Source of the DNA: Octopus bimaculoides
Lineage: Eukaryota
Direction of reading: 5' to 3'
Length of the DNA stretch: 64,000 bases
NCBI RefSeq assembly: GCF_001194135.2
Contig: NC_068988.1
Location: forward strand, 34,618,657-34,682,656
Position numbers and translations under genes: made by a program
Notes under the pieces: model-generated
Database searches by the model: none
Told to the model about the DNA's origin: nothing
Seen by the model: the letters and a program-made list of their open reading frames with translations, nothing else
Part shown: one piece after another, positions 1,670 to 2,640 of the stretch
Layout: every line of letters begins with the position of its first letter
How positions within the stretch are numbered: position 1 is the stretch's first letter

Positions 1670-1700
1670 TTCTTTTATTTTTTTTCTTTTGCAGGTAAGT
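1670..1700 (+). promoter_or_regulatory. Juxtaposed 3' and 5' splice-site consensus (candidate recursive splice site)
   Basis: 21-nt pyrimidine tract (one A) + GCAG, followed immediately by GTAAGT (AG 1693-1694, GT 1695-1696). Confidence 0.5.
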
Positions 1701-2640
1701 CCATTGCCCTAAGAAGACAATTGGCAGGCATTCTTATGTTTTTAAAATTCTTATTTAAATCCGGCATTTTGTTCATGGCCTGAGTTTATACAGTGAGTAC
1801 CAGTTAAATAAATATTGTGATCTATTTAACCAGCTACAAGCCCTATAAATTTATTTGCTGTCTTTAGAATTTATTAATATTTCCATTTCATTTTTGTATT
1901 TGGGTTGCAAGATTCTTGTTGTGAACTTGTGTGTAGCAACAAAATGACTTTGACAAACACAACTGATTGATTGATTAATTGAATGATTAATCAAACATTC
2001 AGTTAGTTGGTTAAATAGCTAGCCTATTGACATGCAATAATAAAGAAGTGATATTGAACCAGTGCATGTGTTTATTGTTGGCATAATGACCCTCTCAAGA
2101 TATAACAATATATTTGGTGATATTACTATATTCAACATAATTGTAGAGTTTCTTCAAAGTTCTTTATCTAAAAAAAAAAAATTGTGACTGAATCAGAAGA
2201 GGTTGAGCAGTGCTCATGACTCCAGGTTAAGATTGTGTGGAACTTGGGGAGGGGCACAATTTTCCTCAGACTGTGAACCAGGCCTGAATACTTGCAACAG
2301 AATGGTCTCCATTTGAAGCAACTGGAGGCTAGATAAGGTGTTAAAATAGACGACAGGGTATTAAGCATACCACCCAAGTTAAAAACTATGTGTTGAATTT
2401 ATTTTTTTGTTTCAACTTAAATTAATTATCTTTAGTCTTTTATATTTCCTATTTGGCACACTGGTTGAATGATTCTGTTGTCGGATAAATCTATCTTGGA
2501 TAGATTTCAGAAATGATTATCTGTCGCTGATGAGAATAGAAGCTGTAAAAAAAATTGTTTTAATTTATTGTGCGTAGTTTGAGATATATGTATACTTACA
2601 TGCATACATACATGCATACACGTGTGTGTGTGTGTATTTA

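Follow-up and report, generated by a model that had tools for sequence, protein, structure and literature searches.

The 64-kb stretch of Octopus bimaculoides DNA analysed here (NC_068988.1, hereafter the window) has a GC content of about 34%, is rich in microsatellites, and contains assembly gaps totalling 1,691 N. Close to its start, in a 259-bp interval (1626–1884) between a tRNA-derived SINE and a foldback repeat, the + strand carries a splice acceptor joined directly to a splice donor, which reads as T (1670) followed by TCTTTTATTTTTTTTCTTTTGCAG (ending at 1694) and then GTAAGT (1695–1700). By block, the letters are t at 1670, tcttttattt at 1671–1680, tttttctttt at 1681–1690, gcag at 1691–1694 and gtaagt at 1695–1700, and this read-out places the fused acceptor and donor at 1694/1695 to the base, exactly where a first-pass annotation of the window had put it. 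The polypyrimidine tract (1670–1690) has 19 pyrimidines in the 20 positions of 1671–1690 and includes TT at −5/−6 of the acceptor (T at both 1689 and 1690). The CAG acceptor of the putative ratchet point (1692–1694), as seen in the sequence read-out and the motif counts, forms a 9/9 match to the U1 consensus together with the GTAAGT donor joined to it (CAG/GTAAGT). The sole AG in 1640–1694 is that of the acceptor itself (1693–1694), which leaves an AG-free zone of 53 nt upstream (1640–1692), and within this zone a branch-point-like TTTAT (1664–1668, matching yUnAy) has an A at position 1667, which is 27 nt before the AG, though we regard this as weak evidence because such motifs are frequent in AT-rich DNA. 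On the − strand the site reads only as an A-rich tract devoid of signal, and that orientation was rejected. Donor 1695 is the top-scoring among the 7,705 GT on both strands of the window when judged by a crude position weight matrix (PWM; a rough consensus and not MaxEntScan), and among the 322 AGGT on both strands the 1694/1695 site is the only one where tract and donor are both strong.

A second donor, ACA/GTGAGT, is found downstream (GTGAGT at 1793–1798 on the + strand, preceded by aca at 1790–1792 and hence with A at −1), and this would close a putative cryptic RS-exon of 98 nt (1695–1792, + strand). The length of this interval is not a multiple of three and it contains stops in all three frames, located at 1710 and 1743 in frame 0, 1696 and 1756 in frame 1, and 1781 in frame 2; the coordinates given earlier for the second donor, the interval and the stops at 1696, 1710 and 1781 were all correct. 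Inclusion of the 98 nt in a transcript would therefore shift the reading frame and bring premature stops, as is often the case for vertebrate RS-exons. Because of the A at −1, donor 1793 scores lower in total than the ratchet donor (PWM totals of 2.7 and 9.1, respectively), while the intron parts of the two score about equally. It should be noted that 99 of the 4,235 + strand GT (2.3%) have PWM scores at least as high as donor 1793, and that a GTRAGT can be expected within 170 nt with a probability of 6% by chance. The second donor is unremarkable when considered by itself and adds little to the case.

The motif is closely flanked by repeats on both sides. Upstream of it, an (ATT)n run and SINE copy (1411–1625, + strand) end about 70 nt before the AG, and relatives of this SINE are located at 426–681, 747–910 and 3222–3481. 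All four copies are in the + orientation and contain a B-box-like GTTCAAATCC, and each has a trinucleotide microsatellite, (ATC)n or (ATT)n, in front and ATT/GTT repeats at the end, as if the copies had been inserted into the tails of earlier ones. The possibility that the motif is a piece of the adjacent SINE was ruled out because the 3′ flanks differ between SINE copies. Downstream of the motif is the foldback or MITE-like repeat (1885–2113, with no strand assigned), which has a self-complementary core at 1961–2004 and shows 81–91% identity to positions 6546–6995 of an Octopus vulgaris locus on OX597824.1 (referred to here as L002), which is unrelated to the window and carries a copy of the repeat. 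The same L002 locus includes a tandem array at 16600–18150 with a period of ~184 bp and units that are 67–80% identical to the body of the SINE in our window, and this looks like a SINE-derived satellite. The SINE and foldback sequences shared with this locus favour an octopus or a near relative as the source of the window. The 1626–1884 interval, in contrast, had no second copy in the 84 kb of octopus DNA we compared.

We also observed two larger repeat structures elsewhere in the window. The first is a nested inverted repeat (52782–54079) with outer arms at 52782–53012 and 53849–54079 (97% complementary), inner arms at 53007–53135 and 53715–53843 (91%) and at 53113–53377 and 53476–53740 (93%), and a 98-nt centre, forming a ~1.3-kb element able to fold into a hairpin and in which the same ‘ORF’ can be read on both strands. 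The second consists of related segments some 732–737 bp apart (49477–49705 compared with 50209–50437, 92%; 49326–49463 compared with 50063–50200, 73%), which lie inside (TA/CA)-type microsatellite arrays and read on the − strand as long pseudo-ORFs of low complexity with much R, E and G.

ORF listing, a search for GC peaks and scoring of amino-acid composition revealed no credible coding exon in the 64 kb, and these scans returned only low-complexity ORFs derived from microsatellites plus the tail of an RTE-like LINE (56295–56645), which is the sole protein-like ORF in the window. The best named relative of the LINE ORF is a hypothetical protein from O. vulgaris (P0004, 81% identity) which is encoded on OX597824.1, and the L002 locus containing it was rejected as an orthologue of the window as only dispersed repeats could be aligned. 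We note that the complete LINE 3′ fragment (56295–57204, + strand; 80–81% identity to octopus proteins) includes an exact direct duplication of 274 nt across a short N gap (56509–56782 and 56793–57066, 100%), and this looks like an artefact of the assembly or else a tandem duplication of very recent origin. A further RTE-like ORF with 80% identity to this fragment occurs on a 1,569-bp contig of the metagenome assembly ERZ22665968 (L001), which apparently contains octopus-like host DNA. Rfam and tRNA scans of the window were empty, and exact look-ups of the 44-aa ORF spanning the site, its 69-aa neighbour and ten long ORFs from the window gave no match. Similarly, no homologue of nine concatenated local ORFs (469 aa) was found among 5.8 × 10⁹ proteins, nor any match to a 26-mer spanning the junction in JGI metagenome contigs.

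The exon-free 64 kb is compatible with a very long intron or with intergenic DNA, and fits either. Some indication of strand comes from base composition, as the + strand (T−A)/(T+A) skew was +0.060 after simple-repeat masking and positive in 16 of 16 4-kb bins, and was still +0.058 (5.8%) after masking every detectable repeat; the GC skew across the window was small and variable. In eukaryotic introns T usually exceeds A on the coding strand (PMC5786239), and the skew we observed thus points to the + strand as the sense strand and suggests a single direction of transcription or replication over the whole window. It could also stem from replication asymmetry or the orientation of transposable elements (TEs), and is read here on a scale not calibrated on octopus. 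Together, the absence of coding exons and the T>A skew argue weakly and indirectly that the window may lie inside a long + strand intron. Introns of great length are present in octopus neuronal genes, as seen in the G-alpha-o gene of O. vulgaris (P0098, GCA_951406725.2), which covers a range of 145.6 kb for a product of 384 aa.

The weight that can be given to the fused motif depends on how often it is expected. CAGGTAAGT alone is not significant, since it occurs once on both strands of the window when 0.52 are expected, and at least one copy is present in 40 of the 100 dinucleotide shuffles (the first-pass annotation had estimated well under one of these 9-mers per strand, which is roughly right at ~0.26), and AGGTAAGT occurs twice compared with an expectation of 2.46. 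The composite YYYYYYYYNCAGGTRAGT also occurs once in the window and was not found in any of 100 shuffles (0.00 expected). As dinucleotide shuffles break up real T-runs, a second estimate was made from real sequence. Using a threshold of at least 17 pyrimidines in 20, tract-plus-CAG sites number 11 on both strands of the window and have a density of 9 × 10⁻⁵ per strand-base (from 165 kb of octopus strand-bases), while the probability of GTAAGT given CAG is 1.4–3.4 × 10⁻⁴ (Markov orders 1–4); multiplying density by probability gives ~0.002 composites expected per 64-kb window. The octopus genome is about 2.7 Gb in size, and at ~2 × 10⁻⁸ per strand-base some 100 chance composites would be present in it, of which copies at the observed strength (19/20 pyrimidines and TT at −5/−6) would number ~6–30. 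The argument from rarity made in the first-pass annotation therefore stands for one window, where ~0.002 is expected, but fails for the whole genome with its ~6–100 chance copies.

All of the testable sequence-level hallmarks of ratchet points and RS-exons are present at the candidate site, and we suggest that 1694/1695 may be a recursive splice site with a cryptic RS-exon on the + strand of a very long octopus intron, with a probability that we put at roughly 40%. This reading draws on the exactness of the motif and its rarity both in shuffled sequence and per window, and on its position as the only strong tract-plus-donor AGGT and the best donor among all GT in the window. It also draws on the TT at −5/−6, which is as seen in fly ratchet points, on the AG-free zone and the TTTAT at −27, and on the weaker donor 98 nt downstream which closes an out-of-frame and stop-filled interval, an arrangement matching the model described for flies (PMC8605326) and the features reported for mouse (PMC8797253). 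The context is compatible with it, with no coding exon in the 64 kb, a T>A skew, and long introns in octopus neuronal genes. Amongst these, the concordant extras (the TT, the AG-free zone, the weaker donor, the stop-filled interval and the skew) provide a modest strengthening of the case. Counting against a recursive splice site are the TE-dense setting, with a SINE only 70 nt away, and the 98-nt length of the RS-exon compared with the ~50 nt of those in flies.

Were the site to function in this manner, U2AF and U2 would pick out the CAG at 1694 along with its branch point and long U-tract, and U1 binding to GTGAGT at 1793 would define 1695–1792 as an exon. The upstream exon would then be joined to 1695, removing the first segment of the intron, and the new exon–1695 junction would recreate a strong 5′ splice site in which the exon end is followed by GTAAGT. 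This regenerated donor would be expected to out-compete ACA/GTGAGT, so that the 98 nt and the remaining intron would leave in the next step, and removal in steps of this kind would leave an mRNA without any trace of the process. Mistaken inclusion of the 98 nt would introduce a frameshift and stops, and might mark the transcript for nonsense-mediated decay.

The most serious alternative to recursive splicing is that the site has arisen by chance, and we consider this to be almost as probable. According to this, a T-rich low-complexity tract happens to be followed by CAGGTAAGT in AT-rich, repeat-dense and non-coding DNA which is intergenic, antisense or otherwise unspliced, and this would include the possibility that 1626–1884 is a fragment of an unrecognised repeat family. 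The expectation of half a copy of the 9-mer per window is in keeping with this, as are the other strong tract-plus-CAG sites which show no sign of function, the ~100 composites expected genome-wide, the modest odds of finding a GTRAGT nearby, the failure to detect any gene, exon or RNA family in the window, and the position of the site squeezed between a SINE and a foldback repeat. True RS sites are also very rare in mouse (PMC8797253). Against this, the composite has a single-window p of ~0.002 or less, several independent extras agree with one another (the TT, the AG-free zone, a weaker donor further downstream and a T>A skew that favours this strand), and 1626–1884 lacks a second copy in the 84 kb of octopus DNA compared.

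The choice between chance and a recursive splice site turns on the number of true strong-motif sites in octopus compared with the ~6–100 expected by chance. Recursive splicing in flies involves more than 500 ratchet points and these are found in almost all very long introns (PMC6110457, PMC8605326), whereas only 20 RS sites were found among 28,382 long introns in mouse brain (PMC8797253). Set against tens to ~100 chance copies, so few true sites mean that a call based on the motif could predict poorly if octopus is vertebrate-like. The candidate site is probably real if octopus resembles the fly in this respect, and chance becomes the more likely explanation if it resembles the mouse.

It is less probable that 1695–1792 is an ordinary small exon, being non-coding or part of a UTR or lncRNA, or else a ‘poison’ cassette exon, which would be retained in some mature transcripts and in which the GTAAGT at the start is incidental or makes it an expressed RS-exon. 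A strong acceptor followed 98 nt later by a GTGAGT donor is an exon-sized unit, but introns commonly hold such pseudo-exons. Moreover, every frame is stopped, the length is not a multiple of three, and no protein homologue was found for any frame. Donor 1793, with its A at −1, is also weaker than the regenerated GTAAGT, and the competition model would favour skipping of such an exon (PMC8605326). Finally, the site may be a plain donor in which a U-rich upstream exon ends at 1694, GTAAGT is its 5′ splice site and the AG never serves as an acceptor, but despite the perfect donor sequence this is very improbable, as all that separates the SINE from the site is 70 nt made up of an AT-rich spacer followed by a U-tract of 21 nt, with no ORF or exon-like composition and a layout resembling that of a 3′ splice site.

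A recursive splice site at 1694/1695 would have wider implications. Full-text searches of a literature collection found no paper treating the process in octopus, squid, other cephalopods or molluscs in general and returned incidental co-mentions only, in agreement with the first-pass annotation which was not aware of the process having been described in cephalopods. It is conceivable, though in our view doubtful, that octopus clears its very long neuronal introns by zero-nucleotide recursive splicing of the Drosophila type via cryptic RS-exons, and that this site is the first ratchet point from a mollusc or any lophotrochozoan. If this were true, the RS-exon mechanism would be ancestral to the bilaterians, and the sequence rule used here would allow a genome-wide search for such sites in cephalopods. 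Recursive splicing has been documented in insects and vertebrates and is regarded as metazoan-wide (PMC8605326), and because the mechanism is already considered common to flies and mammals, a real site would extend it to a new phylum in a manner that is useful and not very surprising. Cephalopods are invertebrates with genomes of vertebrate size and very long introns in their neuronal genes, and knowing whether they have hundreds of strong ratchet points like the fly or ~20 like the mouse would reveal how such introns are dealt with and at what point the mechanism originated. One candidate motif cannot decide between these, and its value is as a precise and cheap test case.

The systems with which the octopus site can be compared are the ratchet points of flies, the RS sites of vertebrates and the pseudo-exons found in introns. 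Intronic ratchet points, at which recursive splicing proceeds through a zero-nucleotide exon, have reportedly been characterised in Drosophila by Hatton in 1998, Burnette in 2005, Duff in 2015, Joseph in 2018 and 2021, and Pai in 2018, and in 2015 Sibley is said to have found recursive splice sites with RS-exons in the long neuronal genes of vertebrates. Accounts of the fly ratchet points and their cryptic RS-exons are given by the Duff preprint (10.1101/006163) and PMC8605326, and these sources, together with PMC8797253, bear out the first-pass annotation in its account of the YnCAG/GTAAGT motif of flies and of cryptic RS-exons. TT is found at −5/−6 in 196 of 197 fly ratchet points (99.5%; 10.1101/006163). 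The associated RS-exons are typically ~50 nt in length, and according to the splice-donor competition model a stronger ratchet donor coupled with a weaker RS-exon donor goes with complete skipping of the cryptic RS-exon (PMC8605326). The mouse RS sites show enrichment of AGGTAAGT and a pyrimidine tract (PMC8797253).

The candidate shares with Drosophila ratchet points the juxtaposed YnNCAG/GTAAGT, a very prominent U-tract with TT at −5/−6, and a putative cryptic RS-exon that is short, out of frame and bounded by a weaker donor, all within long exon-free sequence. It differs in coming from a mollusc and in having a candidate RS-exon of 98 nt rather than ~50 nt, and while the Drosophila set was defined by conservation and RNA evidence, the octopus site is a candidate defined by its sequence. 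Like intronic pseudo-exons, 1695–1792 is exon-sized and non-coding, has a consensus-like acceptor and donor, and is found in repeat-rich intronic or intergenic DNA. Unlike typical pseudo-exons, it opens on a perfect GTAAGT joined directly to its acceptor, and a tract of 19/20 pyrimidines is rarely seen in pseudo-exons. The vertebrate RS sites are few in number, with 20 in mouse brain; they show high conservation and lie mostly in the first or second introns of genes longer than 294 kb. The octopus site resembles them in having AGGTAAGT complementary to U1, a strong pyrimidine tract and 3′ splice site, and a putative RS-exon with premature stops; for both, introns of more than 50 kb in genes expressed in the brain would be the expected setting, and octopus genome and intron sizes are vertebrate-like, as the G-alpha-o gene illustrates.
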